Of a stretch of 64,000 bases of DNA, positions 29,898 to 58,393 are shown one piece after another. Position 1 is the stretch's first letter. Every line of letters starts with the position of its first letter. The stretch lies in the IMG/VR virus record IMGVR_UViG_3300027770_000025, positions 284,583 through 348,582 of that record. One strand, written 5' to 3'. The notes below the pieces were generated by a model. The model did not search any database. It had not been told where the DNA came from and worked only from the letters and a program-made list of their open reading frames with translations. Made by a program: the position numbers and the translations under genes.

Positions 29898-31244
29898 TTA
29901 AAATTTCGAAGAAAGATCGTCTGAAGAATCTTTGTCCTGTCTAATGTCTACAAAACGTGGTAAGAAAAGGGATCTATTCTCGTGCTTATCTGTAATAGTG
30001 ACGTTATATAAAACTGCTGCGATTTTTCCAATGTGTGAATCGGGATCTTTACTTAAAGATTGTAAATCAAGATCTGTGAATCCGGATCCAACTTTAACAT
30101 TAAGTGTCTTCGAAGCATCAGTCATAATAAACCCACCGATATAGCCTTCCCTTTTACCTTCACCTGGATACCATCCGGTAATTTCAAGGTCACATTCATT
30201 AACCTCTTTGAACTTGACCCATGATTTAGATCTTTTGCATTCATAAGCACCGTTGTCTTTACAGATTACACCCTCTCCACCAATATCTACAATTTTTTTA
30301 TAAATTGCAGGGACTTCACCAGGATCAGAAAGCTCCCACATCTGGGCAAGCTTAACTGGTGATTCATCGGATAATCCATTGGTAATTTTTTCTAAAGTGT
30401 GTCTCCTATCAATATACTCTAAAACACCAACTCCTTTATCTAAGGTTACAAGTTCATCGAAATCAAAAACATTAAATAAAAATCCACTCTCTATATCAAT
30501 ACTGGCTGTTCCCTTTAGTATTTGTGTTACCTTACCGCTAACTGACTTTCTATTTAAGTCAGTTAATTCGCCGTCAAAAAACCAATTACCAGATAAACCT
30601 GAGTTTATCATACAAAGTTTTAAATCGAAAGTTATCTTAGGGAAGCAAGAGGCATTAAGCTCATTGAATGCCCGGGTAAAATATGTTATCTCACCATTTT
30701 TATATACTGCAATCACACGGACGCCATCATATTTTTCCTCACAATAGATTTTGTCCCATTTATCGATTGTTGAATGATCGTCGGTAGCTAGCATTAAGGA
30801 AGGATCTGGGATTAGCTCTCTAGAAAGTGCCTTATTAATTAGCTTTGCTCCAATCCCTATGTTCATTCTCTTGGTTAATATCTTCATAAGAGTCTTGCGG
30901 AGTTCTTCGTCTTCGCTTTCAACCTCTGATAATTTAGAGGATAATAATGTTTCCGCTCTAGATCTTAGCGAATCGTTTGCAGCGGGTGCTTTCTTTAAAT
31001 CTTCAACCAAATCTTTAAACTCCTCCCATAAATTAGGATTATGCTCTTTACACTGGGGTGGGAAATTTAGCTTATGCAGCTTAGTAGTAACAAAAGGATT
31101 AAAGCATGTATCCAGGATATACTCCATTTGAGGATTTATTGACTCCTTAATTAATACCTGTTTTGCTTTTTGCGAGCCATCACCTGTTAGAGATTCTACT
31201 ACCTTTAGAATCTTAATACTGTTTACCATTTCATCAAATTTCAT
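29898..31244 (-). CDS. ATP-dependent DNA ligase
   Basis: EEKYDGVR, FDGEL, EGVICK, KFKE, VGSGFTD, LFLPRF; early promoter at 31262-31282. Confidence 0.95.
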   Translation of the reverse strand: MKFDEMVNSIKILKVVESLTGDGSQKAKQVLIKESINPQMEYILDTCFNPFVTTKLHKLNFPPQCKEHNPNLWEEFKDLVEDLKKAPAANDSLRSRAETLLSSKLSEVESEDEELRKTLMKILTKRMNIGIGAKLINKALSRELIPDPSLMLATDDHSTIDKWDKIYCEEKYDGVRVIAVYKNGEITYFTRAFNELNASCFPKITFDLKLCMINSGLSGNWFFDGELTDLNRKSVSGKVTQILKGTASIDIESGFLFNVFDFDELVTLDKGVGVLEYIDRRHTLEKITNGLSDESPVKLAQMWELSDPGEVPAIYKKIVDIGGEGVICKDNGAYECKRSKSWVKFKEVNECDLEITGWYPGEGKREGYIGGFIMTDASKTLNVKVGSGFTDLDLQSLSKDPDSHIGKIAAVLYNVTITDKHENRSLFLPRFVDIRQDKDSSDDLSSKF

Positions 31245-31465: not shown

Positions 31466-33079
31466 TTATAGAGTTACTTCCGGTGCTTCTTCTTCCGCAC
31501 CTTCAGCTGGAGCAGCTTCTCCTTCAGCGGCTTCAGCTTTAGGAGCTTCTTTTGCCTCTTTTTTCTTGTAAGATTCGTTAGCTGCTAATTGATCTGGTGT
31601 TAATCCAAGGAATCTTTGAATAAGATAATCATTATCAAAATATGCTTTTTCCTCTTCCCCTGCTTTAACCTTAAGTTCTCCTAGGCCTTTGATGAATTCA
31701 CTTCTTTTAGAAAAATTGGTTAATTGAACCATTTCTTCAAATTCACTTTCCCTATGAAAATCTAATCCAAGATTTGTTTTAAAGCTTCTATCCCTAGATA
31801 GTTCGGGAAAATCTAAACACATCTGAATGTATAAAGGTTTTACTAATATCTCTTGAAATATCGATCTTAATCTCCTTAGAAATTTCTCAAATCTTATCTC
31901 ATCTCTTTCCAATTGATCTATTCCTGTCTGATAGTTAACTGGACCAGAAGCTCTGGATGCAAACCTAGCATAAGGTATCTTTGAATCCATTTTAAGCTTG
32001 TTATAGAAATAAAGAACATTATCCATAACGTTGAAATCAGGTCCGCTTGGATTAAGTGACTCAATTTGAGGTGATTGTCCATTCTGTTCCGGGAATAGAT
32101 AGTTTTTATAAAACTGAACCTTAGGTCTTCCATTAACTGTTAATTCCCCTGATGCGTCATTAATTGAGATATCTTCCTTATAGTTTGACATTAGCTGTCC
32201 TAAAGTTTGCATCGCTTTTTGAGGTGATTGGCTTCCGGTAGGTATAATAAATTTAAGTCTATAAGAAGCATTCATAACATTCCAGATTATTCTGGAATTT
32301 TCCATGATCCTAAGAATGTTATATGATCTAACTAATCTCTCGATATAGCTAACCCTAGATACGCTGTTTCCTTTAGCATAAGAGATATAGACAATCTGCT
32401 CGTTTGTAAGCTTCCGAGTCATTTGCGGATTCTTGGGATACTGAATCCAAAATTGCTGATATTCATTCTCACCAATTTTTTCAACCGCTGGCTGAAGTGA
32501 AGAAGCATCCAATTCTTTGAATCCTATTATCTCCTTACCCTTATTATCATAGATAATCTCGAAAGCAAGAAATCCATCTATTAGGAATTGTTTAAAATAC
32601 TGCCATCCTAGTATAGAATTCTGAAATCCAAAAACGTTATAAATCCTGTTATAGTGATCGGCTATTTTATCCTTTACCTTTTCCTTAATATCTAGATTAA
32701 CGAAAGAAGGATTAGCAAAATAATTTCTATCGTCGTATGTGATAGATTCGTCTGTAATAGTATCAAGTATAAATTCAATTTCTCCATTTAGTGAAAATTT
32801 TCTTAAAAAGTTTCTTTTTTCTATATAATCCTTATCGAAATAAGCAATATATTTTCTTACCTTGGTATCCTGATAGGAAGCTGTCCAATAGAAAGCATCA
32901 TCCTGGGTAAATCCAGTCCCCTGCTGAGAGAAAGCTCCTTCTGTTTTACCTATGGCCTGAGAGTTTCTAACGACCATATCATCATACTGCATACCAAACT
33001 TGGAAACCTTTCCTAGGTTCCTTATTATGTTGCCTAGAGCTGACTCGTTAGGTCTTAAAAAATCTAAAAATCCTGCCAT
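31466..33079 (-). CDS. gp20: Portal protein (gp20-like), paralog 2
   Basis: FLIDG, SYIERLVRSYNILRIMENSRIIW, KIPYARF, RDEIRFEKFLRRLRSIF. Confidence 0.88.
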   Translation of the reverse strand: MAGFLDFLRPNESALGNIIRNLGKVSKFGMQYDDMVVRNSQAIGKTEGAFSQQGTGFTQDDAFYWTASYQDTKVRKYIAYFDKDYIEKRNFLRKFSLNGEIEFILDTITDESITYDDRNYFANPSFVNLDIKEKVKDKIADHYNRIYNVFGFQNSILGWQYFKQFLIDGFLAFEIIYDNKGKEIIGFKELDASSLQPAVEKIGENEYQQFWIQYPKNPQMTRKLTNEQIVYISYAKGNSVSRVSYIERLVRSYNILRIMENSRIIWNVMNASYRLKFIIPTGSQSPQKAMQTLGQLMSNYKEDISINDASGELTVNGRPKVQFYKNYLFPEQNGQSPQIESLNPSGPDFNVMDNVLYFYNKLKMDSKIPYARFASRASGPVNYQTGIDQLERDEIRFEKFLRRLRSIFQEILVKPLYIQMCLDFPELSRDRSFKTNLGLDFHRESEFEEMVQLTNFSKRSEFIKGLGELKVKAGEEEKAYFDNDYLIQRFLGLTPDQLAANESYKKKEAKEAPKAEAAEGEAAPAEGAEEEAPEVTL

Positions 33080-33088
33080 TTCTTATTT

Positions 33089-34699
33089 TTATAATGTTAC
33101 TTGGGTTGATTTTTCTTCTCCCTCTTCACCATTCTCTCCGCCTTCTTTATCCTCTGACTTTTTCTTTTCCTTCGCTTTTCTATCCATAACCTCTCTATTT
33201 GCAATGATATCTTGTCTAGACATACCAAGGAATGTTTCGATAAGAAATGCAGTAGAGAAATAAGGCTTTTCCTCATCACCAACTAATCCGGACATAGCAG
33301 TAACAGATTCTTTTCTTTTGTTGATCACGTCCATTTCCTGATTAATCTTAAATGGATTATCAGAAAAGTAGTCAAGTCCCATTTGACTTTTAAACATGAA
33401 ATCTTTTTCTAAATGTGTATATTTCTTAGCCATCTGAATCCAGAGTGGTTTGACTAATATCTCTTGGAATACAGATCTTAATCTTTCGATAAATTTGGCA
33501 AACCTTATCTCCTCCTTGTCCAATCCTTCTGCACCGTTAGAGTAGGGAGAAGTATTACCCCCGTCGGGTGTATGAAATCTAGAGGGTGGAACTTTCGATT
33601 CCTGGACAAACTTATCAAAGAAATATGATAAAGGTGCGGGATCATTAAGATTTGGTCCTTCTGTATTAACTGGCTCGATAGTAGGTGTACCGTTAACCCC
33701 AGAAGGCATCAGATAGTTCTTATAGAACTGTATCTTAGGTTTACCGTCTACCAGTAATTCTCCGCTATCATCATTTAGCTGAATGTCTTCCTTATAAATA
33801 CTCATAAGTTCTCCTAAAGTCTGCATACCTTTTTGAGGAGATTTAGTACCAATGGGAACTGTCATCTTTAGTCTGAATGAAGAATTCATTACTGACCATA
33901 TAATTCTGGTATATTCTATAATCCTTAGAATATTATAGGGCCTAATTAATCTCTCGATGTAACTTACTCTAGATATAGAGTTTCCCTTAGCGTATGAAAT
34001 GTAAATTATTTGTGGATCGTAAAGTACTCTTCTCCTTTTTGGGTCCTGAGGAAATTGTGTCCAGGTATTAATAAAGGTACCGTCTATTTGTTTTTCAACC
34101 GATGGTACAATAGTAACCGAATCTAATTCTTTGAATCCTACGATATATTTACCGTCATCATCATATATGATCTCAAAGCATAAAAATCCATCAACTAAAA
34201 ACTGTCTGAAGTATTGCCATCCTGTTATATCATCACTGAATCCCCATATATCATAAAGCTTCTTGTAATTCTCATATAACTCATCTTTAAGTTTCTCATT
34301 GATATTAGTTATATCGATAAAATCAGGGTATGCAAAAAAGTTAGCTGGATCATAAGATATAGCCTCATCGCATATAGTATCTAGTACCCATTCTATTTCG
34401 GGATTAAGCGAGAATTTTCTTAAATAATCTCTTTTACCCTTATAATCTTTATCGAAATATGAAATGAATTGTCTTGTAGTAATATCCTGCTTCGCTAATG
34501 TCCAAAGCATGCTTTCATCTTCTACATTAGCCTTATTCTTGTTTAAGAATGCAGCTTCAGTTACACCAACTGCTTGTGAATTTCTGATGACCATGTCATC
34601 ATATTTCATACCAAAAGTGCTTAGCTTTCTCACCGATTCCCTAATCCTCTGTATAACAGGAGATTGGGATGGATCATTATTATCTACAAAACCGGCCAT
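33089..34699 (-). CDS. gp20: Portal protein (gp20-like), paralog 1
   Basis: FLVDG, SYIERLIRPYNILRIIEYTRIIW, KVPPSRF, KEEIRFAKFIERLRSVF. Confidence 0.88.
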   Translation of the reverse strand: MAGFVDNNDPSQSPVIQRIRESVRKLSTFGMKYDDMVIRNSQAVGVTEAAFLNKNKANVEDESMLWTLAKQDITTRQFISYFDKDYKGKRDYLRKFSLNPEIEWVLDTICDEAISYDPANFFAYPDFIDITNINEKLKDELYENYKKLYDIWGFSDDITGWQYFRQFLVDGFLCFEIIYDDDGKYIVGFKELDSVTIVPSVEKQIDGTFINTWTQFPQDPKRRRVLYDPQIIYISYAKGNSISRVSYIERLIRPYNILRIIEYTRIIWSVMNSSFRLKMTVPIGTKSPQKGMQTLGELMSIYKEDIQLNDDSGELLVDGKPKIQFYKNYLMPSGVNGTPTIEPVNTEGPNLNDPAPLSYFFDKFVQESKVPPSRFHTPDGGNTSPYSNGAEGLDKEEIRFAKFIERLRSVFQEILVKPLWIQMAKKYTHLEKDFMFKSQMGLDYFSDNPFKINQEMDVINKRKESVTAMSGLVGDEEKPYFSTAFLIETFLGMSRQDIIANREVMDRKAKEKKKSEDKEGGENGEEGEEKSTQVTL

Positions 34700-34732: not shown

Positions 34733-35338
34733 TCAAATTAATTTCGATTGGTATTCCTTATATATCCCTGCTATATCTAAGCCCTCTACTTGAGATTTTC
34801 TAAGATATGGTATTTTATACCAGTCATCTAGATCTAAAATGCTGATCTCCCTTATGAATGTTGTCTTAAATCCGAAGACTGAATACTCATATCCCGTACC
34901 CAAAAGAATTTTTTTAAGATTTATATTTGTTAAAGGCAGTGGGGTTATTGCTCCACCTTTTGTGTAATGATTTTGGTTTTTCTCTATGATGCTAGTAAAG
35001 TTATCATAGATCTTACCCAATATTTTCACTCTATATTCGGGAGGGGTTACTATTAAATCTATACCAGAGAGTATAATCCCATTTTCTTTTGTCTGGTAAG
35101 AATCAGTACATAGCACTATGGGATTTCTGTCTATAAACTTTCTTTTCTCTGTTACCTCGCTGTCTGTAGGATAGGGAAAGGAGTATATCTCGCCAGGGAT
35201 AAACGGGGGTGAGAATTTCTTCTCCGATTTCCCGCCTTGGAAATACTTTTCTGTAAATATATCATCGGTATTCCTTACAAGATCTGCAATACTGGGAAAT
35301 TCTTTTTTATATTCTAATACTAATTCTGAATAGGTCAT
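34733..35338 (-). CDS. gp2: DNA end protector (T4 gp2-like)
   Basis: PGEIYSFPY...DRNPIVL...GIDLIVTPP pattern; adjacent to gp4 as in T4-like phages. Confidence 0.6.
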   Translation of the reverse strand: MTYSELVLEYKKEFPSIADLVRNTDDIFTEKYFQGGKSEKKFSPPFIPGEIYSFPYPTDSEVTEKRKFIDRNPIVLCTDSYQTKENGIILSGIDLIVTPPEYRVKILGKIYDNFTSIIEKNQNHYTKGGAITPLPLTNINLKKILLGTGYEYSVFGFKTTFIREISILDLDDWYKIPYLRKSQVEGLDIAGIYKEYQSKLI

Positions 35339-35820
35339 CTACTTTTAAATAGAAATTTTTCATCGACCACACCGAATCTAAACCCTCTTTTTTCTGCCCA
35401 TTCCTTTGCTGCTTTGAATTTTGCCTGATTTGTTATCCATACCTGCATACTGTGATTATATGACTTTAACTTAGCAAGAGTCATAGCTCCTTCGTAGATG
35501 GGCTTTTGTGTTTGTCTTTCTGGTTTTATTTCGATAATCCACTCTTGCTCTTCTTCAGATTCTTTGAGTACCTTTATATAGAAATCCACATTATAATCAT
35601 GTTCTTTCTTATCCAGTGGATTGAAATACTTAATTGCTATAGGTTCGGAACTCCATTTTAATATAGAATCATTTGTATCGCAATAAACACAAAAACGATA
35701 TTCCCAGGAAGACCTGTATATTATATTATGGATGTCACCAATATACTTTTCTGGCTTAGATGGTTCAAATTTTCCAGATTTATAATCACCATTAGGCTTT
35801 ACCTTCTTTATATCGGTCAT
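35335..35820 (-). CDS. gp4: Head completion nuclease (gp4/TnsA-like)
   Basis: PEKYIGD...YRSSWE...WSSE...VDFY...EIKP...NQAKFKAA. Confidence 0.9.
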   Translation of the reverse strand: MTDIKKVKPNGDYKSGKFEPSKPEKYIGDIHNIIYRSSWEYRFCVYCDTNDSILKWSSEPIAIKYFNPLDKKEHDYNVDFYIKVLKESEEEQEWIIEIKPERQTQKPIYEGAMTLAKLKSYNHSMQVWITNQAKFKAAKEWAEKRGFRFGVVDEKFLFKSR

Positions 35821-35831
35821 TCGAATTAAGA

Positions 35832-36191
35832 TTAAACGTTATAAGTGTTATCATCACCAGTTATATAACTGAATGGTATCATCTTAGGACTTTTCGGAGG
35901 ATGCAGTTTCTTCCATCCTTTTGCAAATCCATTCTTAGCTATTTGAGTAAAATAAGCAAATGGATTGTTAGATTTTTCCGGATTGAATCTGTCCCAATAT
36001 TTACAAAGATCCTCCATAGCAAATGCCATGCAATCCTCTTTGTCTTCCGGATCCTTATAAGCCATTTTTTTAGATATACCTTGTATCATAAGGTTAAACA
36101 TTCTTATGGTCTCGGGGGTAAGTTTACCCAATTTTTTTGATTCTATAACAGCGACAATAAGTTCACTATTTCTAACATATTCTTTTGCCAT
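35832..36191 (-). CDS. gp55: Late-transcription sigma factor (gp55-like, short)
   Basis: YVRNSEL, FNPEKSNNPFAYFTQI. Confidence 0.8.
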   Translation of the reverse strand: MAKEYVRNSELIVAVIESKKLGKLTPETIRMFNLMIQGISKKMAYKDPEDKEDCMAFAMEDLCKYWDRFNPEKSNNPFAYFTQIAKNGFAKGWKKLHPPKSPKMIPFSYITGDDNTYNV

Positions 36192-36254: not shown

Positions 36255-36286
36255 AAAAAAAAGAACGTAGCCTATTGTCTACGTTC
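36255..36286 (-). terminator. Intrinsic terminator
   Basis: Minus strand GAACGTAG-ACAATAGG-CTACGTTC-TTTTTTT. Confidence 0.8.
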
Positions 36287-36303
36287 CCTGATTGTTTTTA
36301 ATA

Positions 36304-47419: not shown

Positions 47420-47995
47420 TTACATAAACAAATCTTCCCAGTAATCACATATCCATGATGTGGTTACAGTGTAGATAGCTGGATTTTCGTAATCTAACTG
47501 CATATCATTAATGGCAGTACTGATAAAGCAAGAAGGTATTCTAATTCTTCTAAAAACATCCCCTCTTTTATTAAATATCGAGATAACCATAGAACCAACA
47601 TAATCGCTTTTAATACCCATCGCACCTGTTAGTGGATTGTATATTAAGTCGCTCCATTGTCTAAGTATCTTATAAACACTCATTGAATTTACGTCATTTA
47701 AGTTAACCTCAAATTCCATACTTAATGTCATATCACTAGTAGTAGGCTCACCTGCAGCATATCTTCTTTGAGCAAACTTATAAGTTTGTTCAATGTTCCC
47801 GTTTGCTAAAATATCTACGGCCAAACCAGTTATAGATTTAACCTGCTGAGCTAAAATTGATTCCCCTTTAAAAGTCGTGCTAGCATCTACTATTCCCGAC
47901 GGTGGCGTGATCAAAACCTCAAATTGGTTAAGATATACCGGTTCGTAGTTGTTTATCGCGGCTTTAGAGTTTGTATAATGTGGTAAACCTGCCAT
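47420..47995 (-). CDS. gp19: Tail tube protein (gp19-like), paralog 2
   Basis: EPVYLNQFEV, LRQWSDLIYNPLTG, CDYWED; follows sheath. Confidence 0.85.
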   Translation of the reverse strand: MAGLPHYTNSKAAINNYEPVYLNQFEVLITPPSGIVDASTTFKGESILAQQVKSITGLAVDILANGNIEQTYKFAQRRYAAGEPTTSDMTLSMEFEVNLNDVNSMSVYKILRQWSDLIYNPLTGAMGIKSDYVGSMVISIFNKRGDVFRRIRIPSCFISTAINDMQLDYENPAIYTVTTSWICDYWEDLFM

Positions 47996-48012: not shown

Positions 48013-48567
48013 TTATAAGAATAAATCCTCCCAGTAATCAACTGCCCAAGTCATATCATCTATTTTAAATATATCAGTTGAGGTGTAATTAAGATTCATT
48101 TCACTTATTGCCTTAGTGGGATAGCAGTCTCTGCATGTTATTCTTCTGAAAACGTCTCCTTGTTTATTAAAGATAGAAACTACGATAGTACCTGTATAGT
48201 CATTCTTAAGACCCATTGCTCCTGTTAATGGATTATAGATCAAATCACTCCATTGTCTCAATGTTTTAAAAACGTACATTGAGTTGTCATCATTTAAGTT
48301 TACTGTGAAGCTTAAACTTAAATCCAGATAGGTATTATCAGGTTTAGGTCCAGCATAATTTCTTTTAGCAAACTTATACTTTTGAGTAGTTAGTCCTGGG
48401 TTTTTATCTAAGGTAAGTCCACCAACCTTTGACACGTGCTGAAGAAGTATCTCTCCACCCGCAACAGCAGAAGGAGGTATAACAGTAACCTCAAACTGGT
48501 TCAGATAAACAGGTTCGTATTTGTTTATTGCTGATAATGAATTTTGATAATGTGATAGTCCTGCCAT
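48013..48567 (-). CDS. gp19: Tail tube protein (gp19-like), paralog 1
   Basis: Same motifs; directly downstream of sheath. Confidence 0.85.
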   Translation of the reverse strand: MAGLSHYQNSLSAINKYEPVYLNQFEVTVIPPSAVAGGEILLQHVSKVGGLTLDKNPGLTTQKYKFAKRNYAGPKPDNTYLDLSLSFTVNLNDDNSMYVFKTLRQWSDLIYNPLTGAMGLKNDYTGTIVVSIFNKQGDVFRRITCRDCYPTKAISEMNLNYTSTDIFKIDDMTWAVDYWEDLFL

Positions 48568-48613: not shown

Positions 48614-51600
48614 TTATACGAATTGAATAAAGCCTCCCGCTGCTATACCACCTGTTCTGGTAACAGTAATTCTATTTATGAACTTCTGTATACCTCTAGC
48701 AGGTTCGATGATAACGTCTATGATTCCCATATTCATATCAATGATTGCTGGAGTGTTATTAGAAGCATCCATAACAGTTTGGTAGTTGTATATTCCACCG
48801 CCTGCTCTAACGCCATCTAGGTAGTTATCAACTAATGTTTTAATTTCAAGTCTAATTGAATCGTCATTAAAATCAAATAGGTAGTTAGAAAGAATTGACT
48901 GAACGTCTGTTTCGATACTTATTAAAAGGTCTCTTACGTGAACTAAGTTGAATGCAGAGTTAACTTGTTGATAAGCAGTTTGGTTACCAAAGATAACTAC
49001 CCCAATCCCTCTTCTCTTGATGATCGGGTTAATACCGAATGGTTCAAGATTTCCTCTGTCCTCATCGGTAAAGTCATATTCAACACCCACGATATTACCG
49101 CCTCCGCTTAGTATACCTCTTTTTTGACCTGCGATAATTGCATAAGGTTCTCCTGTAGCAAATTTTCTAACAAAGTTATTAGATACCATAGCAGCTGGTG
49201 GTACGTCTATATTTCTATTAGATTCCCTGATAGTAATATAAGGAGCGTAGAATGCAGCAAATTTAGATCCTTCTGCTTCACTAGGTAAACTGAAAGTATA
49301 AGAAGGATTTAGAGATAAGTTACCCCCGTCAACTATATAAGCAGTATTTAAACTTGGATAAGGATTAACAGCTGTAGGTGCGTTAGTAAATCTAGGATCT
49401 GTACTCTTTTGAAACTGAGCCATAGAAGGTGCGTTAATAAGAGCAAGCGATTGCTGTCTTATCATTGCCAATCTGCTTAACTGGTATTTAGAGTTAGGCA
49501 GAATTTGTCCAGAGAATGTATCTACTACGTATCTGAATGATATAACGTCCCTAGAAGCTAATGTCTGAGCAATATTTGTATCATACATAACATCTAGTAT
49601 GGTAGAAACTCTAGCATCAGTTCCGTTAGGTCTATGTGATTCTTTCATGGTAAATCCAGAGAGATAAGTGAAATCAAAAGATCTTGTAAATTGAGATATC
49701 GATGAGAATTTCTGAACTCTTGACATATTACCATTTCCTGAATAATAAAGAACTGGTCTAGCACATGTTGCTTTATAGGTTCCTGATGTAGTCGTAGAAG
49801 CAACTTTAGTGATCTTAGCTAATCTGCTTTGTTGATTGCCTGTTTCAGGTACGCAGATGTCAAGGTCAGTACATACTACCAAATCTCCAACCGACATAGG
49901 TACGTTTCCGTTTGCATCTTCTGTTATGTAGAATGATGTTGTGTCTATTCTAGTACAATCTACGAATTCATTAATCGATCCCTCTTGAGAAATTATATCG
50001 AATTTTTGCGATGATACCGCAGTACCGATATTATCAGAAGCATATGTTGCAGCGAATAATGCTATGTTATTTATAGTATTACCAGCTAAAGAAACGTTTG
50101 TGTGGGATCTTGTGTTAACGTAGTTGAATTGATCCCTATCTACTGTGTTTTCGAAAGTAAGGTAATTTACGCTTGTTCCCGCAGAGTTTAGCCAAATAAT
50201 ATCTCCGTCCATTATTTCGGTATATTTAACATTCTGGAATAATGTTGATGCGTTATAAGCTTGGAGAACTCTTGAGGTTCCAGTTGTAGCATTCGGACCG
50301 GTTACCCCATTAGGCGTAGGTACGTTGCTAACTAAATCTAGATAATCTGAATTACCGAATTGATAAGCGCTAGTGTAAAAAGGTTTAGCACTTCCTGAAG
50401 CTCCTGTATTATATGAGGTTACACTATAAACAGGAGATACCGTTATACCTTGAGATCTATAGTAAGATGTATCTAATGGATGGCTAAAGAATATTCTAAG
50501 CTCGTTATTGACGTCTTTAGTTCCGGTAACTTTAAGTTTAACCAAATCATGTAAAGAGAATTGGTTGATTAATGCTCCAGTTGCACCGGAGATACCTTCA
50601 ACTATACCCATTATGTATTTCTGGTCATCCGAAGAGTTAACAGTTAAGAAAGATTTTAGCTCATTCTTCTGTGTTGCATTTAATAAATAACCCGCAGTTC
50701 CACCTGTTCCTGATGTTTGGAGATAATGTAATCCCGCGTCATAAGCAGAAGAATCGTAAGGAGCAAAAGCTTGGTAAACAACTCCTGCTGTTGTACCTGC
50801 GTTGATTGCGAATAAAGTACCTGCTTTCATACCGGATGTGTATCCAGTAGCTCCTGTAGGACCCGCAAATCCACCAGCTCCAGTAACACCTATTACATTT
50901 TGTGTGTAAAGGTAATCTGCAACTAATGCCTGGTCATAACTTAGGAAGTTAATTGTAGGATTAGCTAAATCCCTGTCTCCCGATAATTCATCAATCAGGT
51001 GATTACCTACTAAATCTATTGTGTATGGATTAGTACAAATATTATCAAATGCTTCTTCGTCAATAGCACAGAATAAACCTGTTGCTGGCGAATTAGAATT
51101 TACTAAGGTTTGTATGTATTGATTAACACCATTAAGATCCACGAAGTCTGGAATTATACATCCTGTTACTGAGGTAACTATATTAACATCCTGTTGGCTA
51201 AGGAATGAATCAATTTGGCTTTTTATGAATCCGTTATTAGTAAAGTAGCTAGACCATTTTGGATCTAAAGCTAAAGCTGCATAATTTGTCCAATCCCCGG
51301 ATACTGCTATTACATCAATGAAATAATCCGAAATATAGTCGTAAGGGTGCATGAAAGTAGGAACGTTATTAGCTCCATACCAATCTAGTGCAAAAATATC
51401 AAAACCTTTTAAAGGTTTTGAAGAGTCAGTAGACTTTCTAGTAATCACACTGATAGGGGTTTTACCCAAGTTAGTTAAAGCAAATAGCTTTCCTGTGTCA
51501 GGTGTACTTAATGTAGCTAAGAAATATTTTGTATCTGCGTACCAGAATCTTTCTTTATTATAGTAAGATGAATATAACTCAGAAGTTACCACTCCGTTAT

Positions 51601-51964
51601 ATTGCTCGGTATCAAGAGAGTATGCTCTATATGTAACCTCATCTGCACTTCCAGTATCTGTGTCATTATTAAGCTTCAATAAATTTAAACCGAAAACCGG
51701 TCCAGTATTTAAACAGGTTAATATCGATCGGTGGAAGAAAGACCCCTTATTTTCTAAGGATCTATCAATGTCTCCAAACACAGAGATCATAGTAGTAGGA
51801 TCAGGAATGTATACAGGAGTATTGAAAGGTCCCTTATTAGAGAAACCCACAACCAATCTAATCGTTTGAGATGTTAGGATAACGCTTTGTGACGCGTCGA
51901 ATTCAAGAGTATAAACCCCTGAGGCTTTAAACTGTGAATAGTCTATTTTAACCTTATTTGCCAT
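48614..51964 (-). CDS. gp18: Contractile tail sheath protein (gp18-like) with large insertions
   Basis: SGVYTLEFD, VGFSNKGPFNTP, VPPAAMV, INPI, VRDLLISIE, LFDFND, IIEPARG; late motif at 51994-52001. Confidence 0.92.
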   Translation of the reverse strand: MANKVKIDYSQFKASGVYTLEFDASQSVILTSQTIRLVVGFSNKGPFNTPVYIPDPTTMISVFGDIDRSLENKGSFFHRSILTCLNTGPVFGLNLLKLNNDTDTGSADEVTYRAYSLDTEQYNGVVTSELYSSYYNKERFWYADTKYFLATLSTPDTGKLFALTNLGKTPISVITRKSTDSSKPLKGFDIFALDWYGANNVPTFMHPYDYISDYFIDVIAVSGDWTNYAALALDPKWSSYFTNNGFIKSQIDSFLSQQDVNIVTSVTGCIIPDFVDLNGVNQYIQTLVNSNSPATGLFCAIDEEAFDNICTNPYTIDLVGNHLIDELSGDRDLANPTINFLSYDQALVADYLYTQNVIGVTGAGGFAGPTGATGYTSGMKAGTLFAINAGTTAGVVYQAFAPYDSSAYDAGLHYLQTSGTGGTAGYLLNATQKNELKSFLTVNSSDDQKYIMGIVEGISGATGALINQFSLHDLVKLKVTGTKDVNNELRIFFSHPLDTSYYRSQGITVSPVYSVTSYNTGASGSAKPFYTSAYQFGNSDYLDLVSNVPTPNGVTGPNATTGTSRVLQAYNASTLFQNVKYTEIMDGDIIWLNSAGTSVNYLTFENTVDRDQFNYVNTRSHTNVSLAGNTINNIALFAATYASDNIGTAVSSQKFDIISQEGSINEFVDCTRIDTTSFYITEDANGNVPMSVGDLVVCTDLDICVPETGNQQSRLAKITKVASTTTSGTYKATCARPVLYYSGNGNMSRVQKFSSISQFTRSFDFTYLSGFTMKESHRPNGTDARVSTILDVMYDTNIAQTLASRDVISFRYVVDTFSGQILPNSKYQLSRLAMIRQQSLALINAPSMAQFQKSTDPRFTNAPTAVNPYPSLNTAYIVDGGNLSLNPSYTFSLPSEAEGSKFAAFYAPYITIRESNRNIDVPPAAMVSNNFVRKFATGEPYAIIAGQKRGILSGGGNIVGVEYDFTDEDRGNLEPFGINPIIKRRGIGVVIFGNQTAYQQVNSAFNLVHVRDLLISIETDVQSILSNYLFDFNDDSIRLEIKTLVDNYLDGVRAGGGIYNYQTVMDASNNTPAIIDMNMGIIDVIIEPARGIQKFINRITVTRTGGIAAGGFIQFV

Positions 51965-52036: not shown

Positions 52037-53878
52037 TCAGAGCAATTTATTGAAATCCCCATAGCTTCTTCCATCTTTAGTCAAAGGACCTTTGTTTCCG
52101 TATCCGTATTCATCATTTTCTGTTGCAATTCCAGCTTCGAGCTTTGCTGTTATTAGTTGTTTGTATTCATTGTCAAGTTCATCAAAGACATCACCGACCA
52201 TTTGGTTGAAATCATATCCATCAAAAAGACCCGGTAGATTCACTAAAGTCATTGCTACGTCATCATGCCCGGTCTGGCTAGAATATGTTCCCCTGTTATT
52301 AAGTCCAAATGTAAATAGTTCAGGGATTGTCCATTTCTTATCATTTACTAAGATTTTTCCCTCCCTTATTAAACTTCTAAGAAGTTCACAGTACTTCATC
52401 TTGTTTTTTTCATTGTATTTAATACCTGGTTTTAGAATCCGAGCAGACTCTGAGTGTTTTGTAAATAAAAACATCTCATCATAATAATCATCATCAGTCA
52501 TTAGTTTTTCATAAAGCAATTCACCCTTGAAATTCATCTCAATAGCTAATTTAGTTCTATCTATGCTTACAACTTTTACTAATCCTCTTAATAGCTTAAC
52601 CAGCTCTTCTAATTTTATCTCGTTATCTCTAAAAACCCCAACCTGTACAAGTCCGAAGAAATCTGACTCATCTTCAAATTCCTCTATTGCTTCTATTACT
52701 TTTTTAGGTAAGGGGGTAACCTTGAATATATTAACAACAGTAAAATCACCCTTTATACCTGCGCTTATATCAACAGAAAAGACGAACTTCTTACCTGGGG
52801 AGTTAGCATTATCTAGATTAAATTTAGGATGCCATAGGAGTTTTTCGTAATTAAGACTTTCCTCGTAATGTAAGCAATCTATCTCTCTCCATTCATATTC
52901 AACTTCATTAGACTTAATTTTTTTAAGCTCATTGGAGCCTAAAAGTAAAGATGAAGAGCTTAAGAATTGGTTACCGTATTCCTGATTGAAGAGTTCCTCG
53001 CTTCCAAGGTTACCTATTTCCAGTTGTTTCCATGCTTCGTCTCTTCCTGGAACTTGCCACCAATCAACCCTTATTGGATTAAAACTATTCTCTCCAGTGA
53101 GAGCACCCTGGTAAATCTCATAGAATTTATTCATTCCATTCGGAGTGGATGTTATGATTATTCTAGATACCTTTGATGATGATACAGTAGGATACGTAGA
53201 TCTAAAGAATGCTTCAATAAAGTTAGTATTAATATGAGCAAACTCATCCATATAAAGGAAGTGTATAGTAAAACCGATACCTGATGTTTTAGTTGTAGTT
53301 TTAGCTAGAATTCTACATCCGTTATCAAATCTCATTGACATCACATTATTAACTATCATTCCAGGTTTAAGAAAGAATGGCAGACCTTTTATAATCGCCT
53401 TGATCTTATCCATTAACTCTTCTGCAGTATCGCCAACATTGGCTAGAATCATCGCATTTTTATCATGATTGAATAAGAGATACCAAACAAGTATAATAGA
53501 TGAAGTTATGGATTTACCAACCTGTCTAGGGGCTAGGAATATATTAAATCTATTTGCCTGATATTCTCTAAGAACAGAGCTTTGATAATCCCTAAGCTTG
53601 ATGTAATTTAAACCCTCATCTGTCATTACCTGGCAGTATTTAGAGAAATATGTAACGTCTTCCGCACATTTTCTCATCTCGAGAATCTCCTCATTAGTAT
53701 ACTCCCAAAGTATATTTGGTTTTTTTAGATCAGGATTTCCGTCATGAAATGGGTTATCCACTTCTTTGTAATCTAATCCCTCTTCATCGATTTTTCTAAG
53801 AAGTTCATTTACTCTTTCTGTGCTCCAATAGCTACTTTCTGATTGGACTTCCTCTTTTTGTACTGCTTCTGAAAACAT
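52037..53878 (-). CDS. gp17: Terminase large subunit (gp17-like)
   Basis: LRDYQ, PRQVGKS, YMDEFAH, ITSTPNG, FNQEY, VDISAG, GHDDVAM. Confidence 0.95.
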   Translation of the reverse strand: MFSEAVQKEEVQSESSYWSTERVNELLRKIDEEGLDYKEVDNPFHDGNPDLKKPNILWEYTNEEILEMRKCAEDVTYFSKYCQVMTDEGLNYIKLRDYQSSVLREYQANRFNIFLAPRQVGKSITSSIILVWYLLFNHDKNAMILANVGDTAEELMDKIKAIIKGLPFFLKPGMIVNNVMSMRFDNGCRILAKTTTKTSGIGFTIHFLYMDEFAHINTNFIEAFFRSTYPTVSSSKVSRIIITSTPNGMNKFYEIYQGALTGENSFNPIRVDWWQVPGRDEAWKQLEIGNLGSEELFNQEYGNQFLSSSSLLLGSNELKKIKSNEVEYEWREIDCLHYEESLNYEKLLWHPKFNLDNANSPGKKFVFSVDISAGIKGDFTVVNIFKVTPLPKKVIEAIEEFEDESDFFGLVQVGVFRDNEIKLEELVKLLRGLVKVVSIDRTKLAIEMNFKGELLYEKLMTDDDYYDEMFLFTKHSESARILKPGIKYNEKNKMKYCELLRSLIREGKILVNDKKWTIPELFTFGLNNRGTYSSQTGHDDVAMTLVNLPGLFDGYDFNQMVGDVFDELDNEYKQLITAKLEAGIATENDEYGYGNKGPLTKDGRSYGDFNKLL

Positions 53879-54662: not shown

Positions 54663-57152
54663 TTATCTGTTTCTAGCGAACTTAGGTATGTTCATCAATG
54701 GTTTAGCATTATCAATTATGTGTGCTAGTTGCGAATCCCTTACTATGTTTTGATTTAAAACAGTAGATTGGGTATCAACATCTATCATATTTTTAAATAG
54801 TCTTATATTACTTAGATATATCGGACCTGTGAATATTTTATAGGCATTTGTTTCTGTTCCATAGAATGGACTTGCTTTATCTGTGTTAATATTAGAAGGT
54901 GCGGCAAATAATATAGGCTCAGTAAACATTCTAACTTCCTCGTGTAGCTTTTTTAATTTACTAGATTGCTCGTTCGGATTAACAGGATCGTAGGTCATCC
55001 CCCATATGTTAGCTGCTATCTGTTTATATGTATTAGAAATATTAACAACTACGCCATACCATTCCCCGTATTCTGGTGTAAATTGTAAAGGAGAATTTAT
55101 GATCATACTATTAAGTCTTATAACCAAGCTCCCCTGGTCTAAGAAAGGATTAGTATTTTCGTCCATTACTCCTGAGTGTATTAGATCTACTCTCATACCC
55201 TTCATGTCAGAATTAGCGTCTAAATAAAGACCGCTTATTAAATTTCTACTTTGTGCTTTTTGTACTTTCCAAACTATAGTTCCTTGTGAGAAAGTGGTTG
55301 AGTTATTTTTGACAGTAAATCTATACTCGTCAATAACTGATAAAACCTCATATCCCCCAGAGTGTAGCTTATCAGCTCTTATTGCAACATAACCTTCAGG
55401 ATTTGTAGCATAGGTTTCCCATCTTTCTAATCTATGTCTATTGGGATAAGTACTTAAATATAAATAATCAGAATCAGAGTTCTCTAGGGTTGCATTTAAT
55501 ATCGGATAACCTCTTTTAGTCATCTTTGTGTTATCGTAGAAATCTCTTAAAGTGAACCAACAAGTGTATGCTAATTCCTCATTATCTCTTAATAAAGGAA
55601 GTGACTTATATCTAACAGCATTCTTATATCTGCTAGGATCGAATATAAATTCAGGCGTATCAGAAAAAGCTTCACTTAGATCATAATAGTTATTTAAAAC
55701 TATTGTCCAGTTATTATTAAGATCGTATTCGATTATCGGAAGATCATTATAAACATAAGATCTGATAGGATCCTGAGACATCTGTGTTATTGTGGTAGCG
55801 TACTGTTGTGGCTTAGAAGACTTTAGCTCCTCAGATTTAACTTCTTCTCCGAATAACTCCTGAGTAGTTACCGCTATTCCTTCTAGTTCCTCCTTGTATG
55901 CAGGATCTTGAAAATATGTATTACTTCTAGGACTGTATTTCTGTAGCTCTATTTTAAAATAAACCGGAGCATTCATGAAATCCCTGAATAAATAAGTTGA
56001 ATTTATTTCGTAAATTCTATTAGTTATAGGGAAGTAAAGAATATCTCTCTTTCTAGGTTGTGATCCTTTACCAAATATGCTTTCAAAATATTTTCTATCT
56101 ATTTGAATTTCAAAAGGATTTTCAAACTGAAGTCCAAAAGGATCATAATTTATTTTATTATCAGGGAATTGATTTTGGGGAACTAGTATTTTAACACATT
56201 TCTCATCAACAACATTGAAAAGAGTGTATTCTCTAAGAATAACATCTTTACCCCTTCCCTGAGGTTGTACAGAATAATAGTTTGCTTCTAATCCAAAAAC
56301 TTTATTAACCATCTGGCTTAAATCCTGATAAAGATTTAAAGCTTTATTTACTGCATAAGGATTGAATGTGAAATTACAATCACTAAATATAACGGGTCTA
56401 GTTGAAACCTCATTAGAACATATTAGTGCAGGTTTTGATATAACTTTCTCTGGTGTAGGAGCATATTCAAGATCAAGTTCAAATTGAACTATCACTATGC
56501 TAGGATCTATTGGTTCGTCTGTATTATAGATTAATGTGCCATCATCATTGACAAGGACAGAGGTAAATCTGAATTCGGGGTAGAACTTATTATTGGGATC
56601 TAAAGTTATTTCAAAAAGATCCGAGAATTCGTTTGTTAATCCTCCTAAAGCTGTTCCTACATTTGTCCAAAGAGACCATGTTTTTCCGTCTATGCTATAT
56701 CTGAAATCTATAGCGATATCATCAGCATCTAATATAGATCCCGAATTATTACTGTTTCCCGTATCAATTATCCATCCCTTAAATTTAGTGACGTATGTAA
56801 ATGGATTATCCCATGATAGAATTCTATAATTACCTATATACGTGAAGTTTAAGGCACTATCTAGCTGTTCTATTCTGGTATTATAGTAATCAATGCTATC
56901 GCAAGGCTTGTAGTAAGTTTTGCCCTCTATTACAACTGTGTGATATCCATCACATCCTATTTGTAATGCTCTAGCTTTTGCAGATTCTGGGGTAGCAAAA
57001 AGATTATCTACTGAAGATTTTTTAATCTTATCAGTATTCTGCAACCCGTCATGATATTTATATCTTATATCAGTAAGATCGTATTGCTCCCCGCTTCCGT
57101 TATAAACTGGGGTTCCTTTCTTAGGAAACTTGTCCTCTGGGTTAAAACTCAT
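54663..57152 (-). CDS. gp14: Neck protein (gp14-like) with N- and C-terminal accessory domains
   Basis: FGLQFENPFEIQIDRKYFE...PRKRDILYFPITNRIYEI core; late motif at 57175-57182. Confidence 0.7.
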   Translation of the reverse strand: MSFNPEDKFPKKGTPVYNGSGEQYDLTDIRYKYHDGLQNTDKIKKSSVDNLFATPESAKARALQIGCDGYHTVVIEGKTYYKPCDSIDYYNTRIEQLDSALNFTYIGNYRILSWDNPFTYVTKFKGWIIDTGNSNNSGSILDADDIAIDFRYSIDGKTWSLWTNVGTALGGLTNEFSDLFEITLDPNNKFYPEFRFTSVLVNDDGTLIYNTDEPIDPSIVIVQFELDLEYAPTPEKVISKPALICSNEVSTRPVIFSDCNFTFNPYAVNKALNLYQDLSQMVNKVFGLEANYYSVQPQGRGKDVILREYTLFNVVDEKCVKILVPQNQFPDNKINYDPFGLQFENPFEIQIDRKYFESIFGKGSQPRKRDILYFPITNRIYEINSTYLFRDFMNAPVYFKIELQKYSPRSNTYFQDPAYKEELEGIAVTTQELFGEEVKSEELKSSKPQQYATTITQMSQDPIRSYVYNDLPIIEYDLNNNWTIVLNNYYDLSEAFSDTPEFIFDPSRYKNAVRYKSLPLLRDNEELAYTCWFTLRDFYDNTKMTKRGYPILNATLENSDSDYLYLSTYPNRHRLERWETYATNPEGYVAIRADKLHSGGYEVLSVIDEYRFTVKNNSTTFSQGTIVWKVQKAQSRNLISGLYLDANSDMKGMRVDLIHSGVMDENTNPFLDQGSLVIRLNSMIINSPLQFTPEYGEWYGVVVNISNTYKQIAANIWGMTYDPVNPNEQSSKLKKLHEEVRMFTEPILFAAPSNINTDKASPFYGTETNAYKIFTGPIYLSNIRLFKNMIDVDTQSTVLNQNIVRDSQLAHIIDNAKPLMNIPKFARNR

Positions 57153-57204: not shown

Positions 57205-58386
57205 TTAGACTTCTTCAGAAGTCCATTCGATAACGGATTGAAATACACGTTCTGGTGTTATTGATTTAGTACATTCAAAATGTCTATCTGTGTCCTTATG
57301 CTCAGGACACCACAACCAATCACCTTTATCGAACTTATGTTCAACTTTATTGAAGCATCCGTGGCAAACATCGGTGTTTATTATTCTGAGAGTTTTGTCA
57401 GAGAATTCACAAAATGGTTGGGTGAAACCTGAGATCACAACAACGGGAACGTCTAAGCCCCAGGCCAGCCACGAAAGACCTGAACTTACACCAACGAAGA
57501 ATTCACAATTAAGTATATCGCTTATTCTGTCCTCTATTGGTCTATCACCAGTTCTATCAATCACATTAGAAAAATGATTTCCCTGTTTATGAATTACAAC
57601 AACTTCATATCCTATACTTTTAAATAGATCAATAAGCTGCTGCCATCCTCCGGGATAATTCCAATGTTTTGCAGCAGCAGTAGATTCTGTTCCGATACAA
57701 ATGTATTTTTTATCCGAAGGGGTTTCATTTATTGCTTTCTTTAATCTTGGTCTGATCTCACCGATATATTCTAGTCCTAATATATCTGATGCAACTTTCT
57801 GCAGCGGACATAATCTAGGATCAACTTTATGATGATTAATATCGGTTTCTTGATACCATCCAATTCCAACTAAAACGTCAATATTATCCTCTCTATATCC
57901 TGGGTGTTTGAATTTAAGAACATCATATTGTCCTTCGAATAGGTGATTCCAGAAAGTAGTGATTGTTATATCCGAACAGTTATGAACCTCTGCGAATCTA
58001 TTAACATAAGGGACCCAAGCTAAAGTGTCACCAAGTGAACTGCTTTCTAAAGAAATTATCACTTTACCCGATCTTATCTTTTTAAAAAGGTTGAATTCAT
58101 GAACCTGCTCACCATTCTTGTCATAAACAAATATCGTTACATCATCAATCCATCTTCTGTATGCGTAGCAGAAATGACCTGTAATTATCTGGGAAGAGTA
58201 TATTACAGAACCCGATGCGTCTTTTATATGTACTGTATACGGTTCAACATTAAAATCTCCAAAGTCTATAGTTACTTTAGGCGATTGATCAAACTGGGCT
58301 CTTATCTTTACCTTATGTTTAAATATAGGGTAATCTGACTTTTTTACGTCATCATAGATAGCTATTGATTCCTTGTGTATCTGCAT
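57205..58386 (-). CDS. Aah/TibC-like protein O-heptosyltransferase homolog (GT-B, Cys cluster)
   Basis: SSSLGDTLAWVPY, KHWNYPGGWQ, FVGVSSGLSWLAW, ISGFT, CHGCFN...WCP...FECTKSI. Confidence 0.8.
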   Translation of the reverse strand: MQIHKESIAIYDDVKKSDYPIFKHKVKIRAQFDQSPKVTIDFGDFNVEPYTVHIKDASGSVIYSSQIITGHFCYAYRRWIDDVTIFVYDKNGEQVHEFNLFKKIRSGKVIISLESSSLGDTLAWVPYVNRFAEVHNCSDITITTFWNHLFEGQYDVLKFKHPGYREDNIDVLVGIGWYQETDINHHKVDPRLCPLQKVASDILGLEYIGEIRPRLKKAINETPSDKKYICIGTESTAAAKHWNYPGGWQQLIDLFKSIGYEVVVIHKQGNHFSNVIDRTGDRPIEDRISDILNCEFFVGVSSGLSWLAWGLDVPVVVISGFTQPFCEFSDKTLRIINTDVCHGCFNKVEHKFDKGDWLWCPEHKDTDRHFECTKSITPERVFQSVIEWTSEEV

Positions 58387-58393
58387 TGATCAT

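Follow-up and report, generated by a model that had tools for sequence, protein, structure and literature searches.

An ancient and conserved tandem pair of portal genes in a clade of uncultured freshwater huge phages

Introduction

The portal is the most conserved machine of tailed phages and herpesviruses and is taught as a ring of twelve copies of one protein. In bacteriophage T4 it is formed by gp20 (Pfam Portal_T4, PF07230; PDB 3JA7, 6UZC, 9LU6/9LU7, 9MKB), the product of one gene that assembles into a homododecamer. Rings or capsomers assembled from duplicated modules are known from other assemblies, among them the tail tube of phage T5, where a duplicated and fused tube domain in pb6 yields a pseudo-hexameric trimer (PMC10038345), the hetero-hexameric major capsid proteins of sphaerolipoviruses (PMC6441041), and cellular rings such as the V-ATPase proteolipid ring (Vma3/Vma11/Vma16) and the heteromeric PCNA, CCT, proteasome and Lsm rings. 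In literature searches for two portal genes, portal paralogues, heteromeric portals or a description of the clade analyzed here, nothing relevant was found. We analyzed a window of 64,000 nucleotides (positions 284,583 to 348,582 of IMG/VR record IMGVR_UViG_3300027770_000025), for which a first-pass annotation had noted two intact, tandem, diverged gp20 paralogs and had suggested a heteromeric (e.g. 6+6) portal or a second specialised vertex.

Features of the locus

The observation held: two intact open reading frames, denoted A and B, encode full-length T4 gp20-type portal proteins on the minus strand, separated by 9 nt. The features relevant to the analysis, in coordinates of the window, are as follows.

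33089..34699 (-), portal paralogue A (536 aa), first gene of the pair in transcription, with predicted N-terminal region, wing, stem, clip, tunnel loop, crown and an acidic tail ending in VTL
31466..33079 (-), portal paralogue B (537 aa), second gene of the pair, with the same predicted domain architecture
33080..33088 (-), 9-nt spacer (AAATAAGAA on the coding strand) between the TAA stop of A and the ATG of B
34733..35338 (-), gp2-like DNA end protector immediately upstream of portal A (phrog_429, E 1.8e-4); the syntenic gene in relatives carries Pfam Phage_T4_gp2
35335..35820 (-), gp4-like head completion (head closure) protein (phrog_218, E 2.5e-47)
35832..36191 (-), gp55-like late sigma factor (phrog_234, E 4.2e-15), first gene of the block sigma, gp4, gp2, portal A, portal B, which also occurs in relatives
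36260..36289 (-), terminator-like hairpin upstream of the block, a probable operon boundary identified by consensus scan only
48013..48567 (-), tail tube paralogue T1 (184 aa), first gene of a second tandem pair (phrog_32623 and tail tube phrog_45)
47420..47995 (-), tail tube paralogue T2 (191 aa), the more diverged copy (phrog_32623 and tail tube phrog_45)
48614..51964 (-), tail sheath (1116 aa; phrog_34521, E 7.6e-119)
52037..53878 (-), large terminase subunit (phrog_5989 and phrog_2), the packaging motor that docks on the portal clip
54663..57152 (-), neck protein of the T4 gp13/gp14 family (829 aa; PF11649, 24.9-25.9 bits; phrog_679), the only member detectable in the genome
16007..17800 (-), gp23-like major capsid protein (597 aa; PF07068, E 3.6e-41; phrog_138), with a distant gp24-like paralogue outside the window

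Sequence and structure analysis

Portals A and B were aligned by BLASTP, which gave 257/504 identities (51%), collinear from MAGF; both proteins end in VTL. In profile searches, A and B matched PF07230 with 191.2 bits (E 3.5e-56) and 229.8 bits (E 7e-68), respectively, far above the cut-off of 22.9 bits, and both matched PHROG 213 ('portal protein'). They are the only two portal matches in the 348,582-bp genome and its strongest paralogue pair in a genome-wide all-against-all comparison. In the same comparison no close paralogue was found of the large terminase or the tail sheath, nor was one found of gp2 or gp4, and the major capsid protein has only the distant gp24-like second match; there is therefore no second terminase or capsid module. 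The blocks YISYAKGNS, MQTLG and QFYKNYL, which the first-pass annotation had listed as identical between the copies, are present in both, but they are family-wide conserved motifs and not the product of gene conversion, as the longest exact nucleotide match between the two genes is 16 nt.

A profile of the family hit T4 gp20 structures at E about 1e-76. AF2 models of A (pLDDT 81, pTM 0.78) and B (pLDDT 80.3, pTM 0.76) show the full portal fold, with wing, two stem helices joined by a clip, tunnel loop, bent helix and crown in the same order, using domain boundaries from PMC4493910. For model A, the top Foldseek hits were T4 gp20 chains (E 1e-19 to 1e-15, probability 1.00), at about 15-18% sequence identity in structural alignment. 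A prediction of the complex of A (75-520) with B (74-520), based on our own alignments, gave a score of 0.01, which is evidence neither for nor against binding.

The 9-nt spacer leaves no room for a promoter or terminator, which implies co-transcription of the two genes. Pieces of both genes and of the junction occur in contigs from three metatranscriptome libraries, one of them spanning 32824-33144; as these are unstranded assembled contigs, DNA carry-over is not excluded.

Phylogeny and distribution

The junction was confirmed in independent data, with a contig of an independent freshwater DNA run spanning 32364-34093, and the same tandem pair occurs in well over a hundred other IMG/VR contigs. 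The contigs fall into two deep groups, group 1 (g1) and group 2 (g2). All 139 group-1 loci and all 66 group-2 loci with both full-length genes have the order A then B, with gaps of 1-23 nt and 2-11 nt, respectively. Every apparent single-copy locus inside the clade is cut by a contig end. Long portal-A matches in three loci (L135, L136 and L144), which suggested an insertion or intron, were the A gene merged with a truncated B gene at a contig end.

The tree, in which the A clade and the B clade are each monophyletic, is ((g1 A, g2 first) 99, (g1 B, g2 second) 94) 97, with 21 single-copy representatives outside, and places one duplication at the base of the clade. Orthologues between the two groups are 52-53% identical, against 48-49% for the paralogues. 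All 88 outgroup loci have one portal, including the 50 that have room for a second, and the near outgroups, designated P0001, P0005, P0006/G007 and P0012, are single-copy. In the P0005 lineage, an open reading frame starting 9 nt after the portal looked like a second portal but is unrelated. In a collection of phage records, 2132 records matched the portal, and only LR756501 and LR756503 had a second match; this looked like an independent duplication, but in LR756501 it is only a 58-residue C-terminal fragment. A megablast search with the locus found nothing in this collection, which holds no close record of the clade.

The tail tube gene, 13 kb away, is likewise tandemly duplicated in the same clade, which the first-pass annotation had not noted. 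T1 and T2 are 54.7% identical, and the T2 clade has a support of 95/99 and a long stem. Of the two-portal genomes, 11 of 11 have two tandem tube genes, whereas 9 of 9 single-portal relatives have one. This co-distribution is a single co-occurrence on one ancestral branch and not a series of independent events. Genome or capsid size does not simply explain the pair, as larger relatives (462-735 kb phages and Lak megaphages) and a smaller complete one (256 kb) all have one portal and one tube.

Selection and paralogue-specific sites

Neutral evolution of one copy and an assembly artefact had been named in the first-pass annotation as grounds for refutation, and neither was found. dN/dS is 0.02-0.03 for both copies at dS 0.07-1.7. 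The dN values of A and of B, measured across the same genome pairs, correlate at r = 0.95 with a ratio of 0.99. Divergence is symmetric, with 65 sites conserved only in A and 59 only in B. Both copies keep the conserved N-terminal motif, the wing, which with 57% identity is among the regions best conserved between A and B, and a shared derived C-terminal (V/I)T(L/I) ending, which fits both copies sitting in the same place in the capsid.

Within group 1, 19 of 25 fixed A/B differences fall in the stem, clip and tunnel-loop core (odds ratio 4.8, p = 9e-4), regions that in T4 form the inter-subunit beta-sheet and the neighbour-to-neighbour tunnel-loop contacts (PMC4493910). When conservation was required across both deep groups, only 6 paralogue-specific sites remained, mostly conservative (Q/K, Y/F, N/G, L/V, D/E, E/D), and their concentration in the ring core was not significant (p = 0.22). 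The interface signal is therefore weak and largely specific to group 1, and we do not rest the case on it.

Interpretation

The two genes are functional paralogues that arose by a single tandem duplication in the common ancestor of a large clade of uncultured freshwater huge phages with genomes of roughly 280-434 kb, probably infecting Bacteroidota. Both are, as the spacer implies, transcribed from one late-gene block in the order sigma factor, gp4, gp2, portal A, portal B. We regard as established by the analysis the duplication and its age, the complete retention of both copies, their equal and strong constraint, the intact predicted fold, the co-transcription implied by the spacer, and the co-distribution with the tube pair; co-assembly of A and B, their stoichiometry and their mutual dependence are inferred. 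The interpretation in the first-pass annotation is thus supported only in part: both a 6+6 heteromeric portal and a second specialised vertex are compatible with all the evidence, but neither follows directly from it.

Most likely, with a probability of about 0.5, both copies have become indispensable subunits of the one portal at the packaging vertex and co-assemble into a hetero-dodecamer, for which the simplest arrangement would be alternating A and B (6+6), turning the 12-fold ring into a true 6-fold ring. The short spacer suggests that the two proteins are made in similar amounts. In this view, the route would be that known for other duplicated ring proteins: after duplication, each copy accumulated changes that weakened self-contacts but were tolerated in mixed contacts, so that neither gene could then be lost. 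We found no precedent for a heteromeric portal, and retention, equal constraint and tight linkage are equally expected if A and B form two separate essential rings. As the tail tube duplicated on the same ancestral branch, the symmetry of the whole DNA conduit, portal and then tube, may have been remodelled in a coordinated way in this lineage. In a further-reaching and only tentative reading, the clade would have replaced the homododecameric portal with an obligate A6B6 hetero-dodecamer and, in the same evolutionary step, the homohexameric tail tube with a two-protein tube, leaving the conduit from capsid to tail tip with half the usual rotational symmetry. This would be the first heteromeric portal known in any tailed virus and a natural example of a duplication ratchet acting on a core virion machine.

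A serious rival, possible although less favored, is that A and B form two separate homo-oligomeric rings with different essential jobs, one being the capsid-embedded portal and the other a portal-derived ring elsewhere or at another time, for example stacked on the portal as an extra adaptor or valve, anchoring an internal core, or marking a second special vertex. Complete retention, equal constraint and operon linkage fit this equally well, each paralogue has its own set of conserved sites, and clade-specific conserved sequences at the clip tip and tunnel loop could reflect different partners. The detection of only one gp13/gp14-family neck protein, whereas T4 has two, could leave a structural slot open, but this match is weak, and too weak to argue that a hexameric neck docks directly on the portal. 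Against two rings, both copies keep every portal domain, including the N-terminal region that head assembly requires in T4 (PMC4493910) and the capsid-contacting wing, which a ring no longer sitting in the capsid vertex would be expected to lose or remodel. Moreover, divergence from the ancestor is symmetric, whereas a new function usually leaves one fast-evolving copy, and no second terminase or capsid module exists.

It is unlikely that A and B are alternative or conditional portals, with each virion using one or the other depending on host or condition, or that one copy serves mainly as a decoy or back-up against host defences. Some bacterial defence sensors recognise phage portal proteins, and huge phages carry many counter-defence genes. 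However, a spacer of 1-23 nt inside one operon gives no means of separate regulation, interchangeable copies should often be lost, yet no loss is seen among more than 200 loci spanning about 53% orthologue identity, and a decoy would not need whole-length constraint equal to that of the working copy. An assembly artefact, a collapsed strain mixture or a recent duplication with one decaying copy, for which nothing speaks beyond the prior expectation that portals are single-copy genes, is refuted by the junction in independent assemblies and runs, the 51% identity with saturated synonymous divergence, the low dN/dS of both copies and the conservation of the pair in two deep groups.

A whole, widespread clade that has needed two portal genes over very deep divergence would be an exception to the rule of a portal made of one protein. 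It offers natural experiments on how symmetry mismatches at the capsid, portal, motor and neck junction are handled, and on how duplicated ring subunits become mutually dependent.

Comparison with known systems

With T4 gp20, the pair shares family, predicted fold and a T4-like morphogenesis context next to gp2, gp4 and a late sigma factor, with one large terminase gene and with sheath, tube, neck and major capsid protein genes in the same window; it differs in that two diverged genes are kept side by side where T4 has one. T4 gp23 and its vertex-specialised paralogue gp24 are likewise a duplicated virion structural protein of which both copies are retained in T4-like phages and fill non-equivalent positions of one assembly, and this genome also encodes a gp23-like and a distant gp24-like protein. 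However, gp23 and gp24 occupy different capsomers (hexamers and pentamers) and are strongly asymmetric in abundance, whereas the portal pair is symmetric in rate and constraint and concerns a single 12-subunit ring.

In the V-ATPase, PCNA, CCT, proteasome and Lsm rings, a homomeric ring gene duplicated and both copies were retained indefinitely under purifying selection, with symmetric divergence and fixed stoichiometry; there, co-assembly and positional specificity are shown experimentally, while for the portal pair they are inferred only. T5 pb6, relevant to the co-duplicated tube genes, shows that a duplicated tail-tube module can build a ring of lower true symmetry (3-fold) that mimics a hexamer, but its two domains are fused in one polypeptide, whereas here they are two separate genes, and T5 has a single portal gene. 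The major capsid proteins of sphaerolipoviruses are two paralogous viral structural proteins that are encoded side by side and co-assemble into one pseudo-symmetric capsomer, in a different fold (single jelly roll), a different virus lineage and a different virion component.

Identification of the portal gene pair

The window comprises the last 64 kb of a 348,582-bp IMG/VR virus record that is rated complete by CheckV. Two ORFs lie head to tail on its minus strand:

33089-34699 (minus strand), portal A, 536 aa
31466-33079 (minus strand), portal B, 537 aa, downstream of A

The two proteins align end to end at 51% identity (257 of 504) from a shared MAGF start, and both end in VTL. Both match Pfam Portal_T4 far above the cut-off as well as PHROG 213, and a profile built from them and their relatives hits the solved T4 gp20 portal at an E-value of about 1e-76. 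AlphaFold2 models of both are confident (pLDDT 81 and 80, pTM 0.78 and 0.76 for A and B, respectively) and show the same complete predicted portal architecture, with T4 gp20 chains as the best structural matches of model A. The two ORFs are the only portal matches in the genome and form its strongest paralogue pair. The observation of two intact, diverged portal paralogues in the first-pass annotation is thereby confirmed.

To exclude an artefact, the locus was traced in independent data. It occurs in at least 17 freshwater or lake DNA runs, and a contig from an independent sample bridges the A/B junction. The longest exact nucleotide match between the two genes is 16 nt, so the identical peptide blocks shared by the two proteins are conserved family motifs and not the product of gene conversion.

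Genomic context

Read in the direction of transcription, the window holds a T4-like late region, with a neck protein (gp13/gp14 family), the large terminase, the sheath and two tandem tail-tube genes, followed further on by a gp55-like late sigma factor, a gp4-like head completion protein, a gp2-like DNA end protector, portal A and portal B, and then by DNA ligase, clamp loader and an exonuclease. The stop codon of A and the start codon of B are 9 nt apart. A terminator-like hairpin precedes the sigma gene, and a 221-nt gap follows B. No close paralogue of the terminase, gp2, gp4 or sheath was found in the genome, and the major capsid protein has only a distant gp24-like second copy, as in T4. 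The ATP-dependent DNA ligase (window 29898-31244) sits between portal B and the clamp loader; in the single-portal relative P0001, a representative from the protein cluster search described below, the portal is followed directly by the clamp loader (locus L175), so the ligase is a lineage-specific insertion at this junction.

Among the 404 called genes of the whole genome, only 5% have a Shine-Dalgarno core upstream, and leaders are A-rich. Stop codons are 307 TAA, 59 TAG and 38 TGA, with no sign of recoding, and there are no tRNA genes in the window. The characterised relatives infect Bacteroidota (Lak phages on Prevotella, and Tenacibaculum and Chryseobacterium phages). Together, these data point to a Bacteroidota host, which is an inference. 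Further duplicated or clustered genes were seen in the same genome:

window 57205-59350 and genome 186972-191261, a two-gene glycosyltransferase module (393 aa and 318 aa), duplicated elsewhere in the genome as longer versions (783 aa and 644 aa, the latter with an added methyltransferase domain)
window 59650-62095, more glycosyltransferases; together with the module, these may indicate glycan modification of the virion or the host surface
genome 104203-112960 (plus strand) and 214194-214940, a five-member family of about 250-350-aa proteins (45-63% identical; phrog_21719 and phrog_7816, function unknown), mostly in a plus-strand island of an otherwise minus-strand genome
genome 244458-249514, three tandem paralogous genes of about 520-580 aa with weak N-terminal matches to tail fibre families, probably a set of alternative receptor-binding proteins

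Distribution and phylogeny

Searches of IMG/VR with each paralogue returned the same contigs, with each paralogue having its own orthologues from 100% down to about 67% identity. Of 157 loci, 149 held two portal ORFs. All 139 loci with both genes complete have the order A then B on one strand, with gaps of 1-23 nt, and the few single-copy cases inside the clade are contig truncations. These loci are referred to as group 1.

A search of 1.84 billion cluster representatives gave a dense set of more distant portals, and in a tree including these, A and B are each other's closest relatives (support 99). One representative, P0002, branched beside A and turned out to stand for a second large group (group 2) of 184 stretches, of which 80 loci were retrieved. 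All 80 have two tandem portal ORFs, and 66 of the pairs are complete, with gaps of 2-11 nt. A single interrupted copy was found among the 80 group-2 loci: in the 5.2-kb contig IMGVR_UViG_3300033571_004955 (locus L323, 2523-2525), the first (A-type) portal copy has one in-frame TAG within the otherwise conserved NYLMP clip motif, which could be a sequencing error, a defective variant, or TAG recoding in that phage, as seen in Lak phages.

The final tree is ((group 1 A, group 2 first gene) 99, (group 1 B, group 2 second gene) 94) 97, with all 21 single-copy representatives outside. Mean identity between groups is 53% for A and 52% for B, as compared to 48-49% between paralogues. There was therefore one duplication, shortly before two deep lineages split, and both copies and their order have been kept ever since. 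The bracketing lineages, represented by P0001, P0005, P0012 and P0006/G007 and by the genomes G009, G010 and G011, are single-copy in the same synteny. So are LR756500, LR745206, LR756501 and Lak-B4, and all 88 further outgroup loci, 50 of which have room for a tandem copy.

In the phage-record collection, 2132 records match this portal and only two show a second match. In one of these, the 735-kb huge phage LR756501, that match is an open fragment of 58 residues (LR756501.1 15166-15351), which lies far from the full portal gene, matches only the C-terminal end of the portal family model, and is probably a relic or a small portal-derived protein. Genome size does not explain the pair, as complete two-portal genomes are 319-434 kb, while single-portal relatives range from 256 kb to 735 kb.

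Selection and sequence divergence

Nei-Gojobori dN/dS between orthologues is 0.02-0.03 for both paralogues in every divergence class, from dS 0.07 to 1.7. Across the same pairs of genomes, dN of A and dN of B correlate at r = 0.95 with a median ratio of 0.99, and the internal topologies of the A and B clades mirror each other. Divergence from the ancestor is symmetric: the post-duplication stems are 0.19 and 0.12 substitutions per site; at polarisable fixed differences, A keeps the outgroup state 4 times and B 6 times, or 2 and 2 when both groups are used; and 65 sites are conserved only in A and 59 only in B. Neither copy is decaying, and neither looks like a fast-evolving derived copy.

To locate the differences between the copies, T4 domain boundaries (PMC4493910) were transferred through the models. 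Identity between A and B is highest in stem helix alpha-5 (72%), the clip (59%) and the wing (55-57%), and lowest in stem helix alpha-7 and the tunnel loop (29%) and in the crown (35%). Within group 1, 25 sites are fixed differently in A and B, 19 of which lie in the stem, clip and tunnel core (odds ratio 4.8 against sites conserved in both copies, p = 9e-4). In T4, these regions form the inter-subunit beta-sheet, and the tunnel loops of neighbouring subunits touch each other. However, when conservation is required in both deep groups, only six such sites remain (Q77K, Y92F, N336G, L357V, D394E and E396D in A numbering) and the enrichment is not significant (p = 0.22), so that the interface signal is suggestive at best. 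Both copies share the conserved N-terminal motif. Both also end in a low-complexity acidic tail (window 31466-31570 for B and 33089-33190 for A) that finishes with a conserved, derived (V/I)T(L/I) tripeptide. The single-copy outgroups end differently; the motif therefore arose before or at the duplication and is kept in both copies, possibly as a binding or processing signal.

Tandem tail-tube genes

The tail-tube gene is also tandemly duplicated in the window, the two products being 54.7% identical:

48013-48567 (minus strand), tail tube T1, 184 aa
47420-47995 (minus strand), tail tube T2, 191 aa, the more diverged copy

This pair has exactly the same phyletic distribution as the portal pair. 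Two tandem tube genes occur in 6 of 6 group-1 genomes (including this one) and 5 of 5 group-2 genomes, i.e. in 11 of 11 two-portal genomes, and one tube gene occurs in all 9 single-portal genomes in which a tube gene was found. T1 and T2 form one clade that excludes the outgroups, in which T2 has a long stem and T1 a short one, so this divergence is asymmetric. Because all two-portal genomes belong to one clade, this is one co-occurrence on one ancestral branch and not a statistical association; both pairs have nevertheless been retained ever since.

Expression

Contigs assembled from three freshwater metatranscriptome libraries cover parts of both portal genes, and one spans the A/B junction. 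This is compatible with co-transcription, but the evidence is weak, as the contigs are unstranded and DNA carry-over is possible.

Interpretation

Complete retention of both genes over very deep divergence argues that each is indispensable, and tight operon linkage argues for joint, probably similar, expression. Retention of every predicted portal domain, including the capsid-facing wing and the N-terminal region, argues that both sit in the portal vertex. The simplest model is one mixed ring, most simply with alternating A and B, which would have been locked in by complementary loss of self-compatibility after duplication, a route documented for other duplicated ring proteins. We assign this model a probability of about 0.5. 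The one complex prediction performed gave no verdict and does not bear on this choice. The reality of the pair, its age and its conservation are established by the analyses, whereas co-expression, placement in the portal vertex, ring assembly, mixing of the two proteins in one ring and their mutual dependence are inferred. The reading of the first-pass annotation, which took the two retained copies to suggest a heteromeric (e.g. 6+6) portal or a second specialised vertex, is compatible with the evidence but not yet demonstrated. The main rival, two separate rings with distinct roles, is possible but less likely; conditional or decoy use is improbable, and an artefact is effectively excluded.

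Comparison with known systems

Both proteins are members of the gp20 portal family by sequence, predicted fold and context. What differs from every described case we could find is the two-gene state, and the pair is unreported in the literature searched here. In T4, the 12-to-6 symmetry step lies between the gp13 dodecamer and the gp14 hexamer (PMC12929587); speculatively, a 6+6 portal would move that step into the portal itself. The closest analogies are T4 gp23/gp24, a duplicated capsid protein with positional specialisation; the T5 tube protein pb6, a pseudo-hexamer built from a duplicated domain (PMC10038345); the hetero-hexameric capsomers of sphaerolipoviruses (PMC6441041); and duplicated cellular ring proteins.
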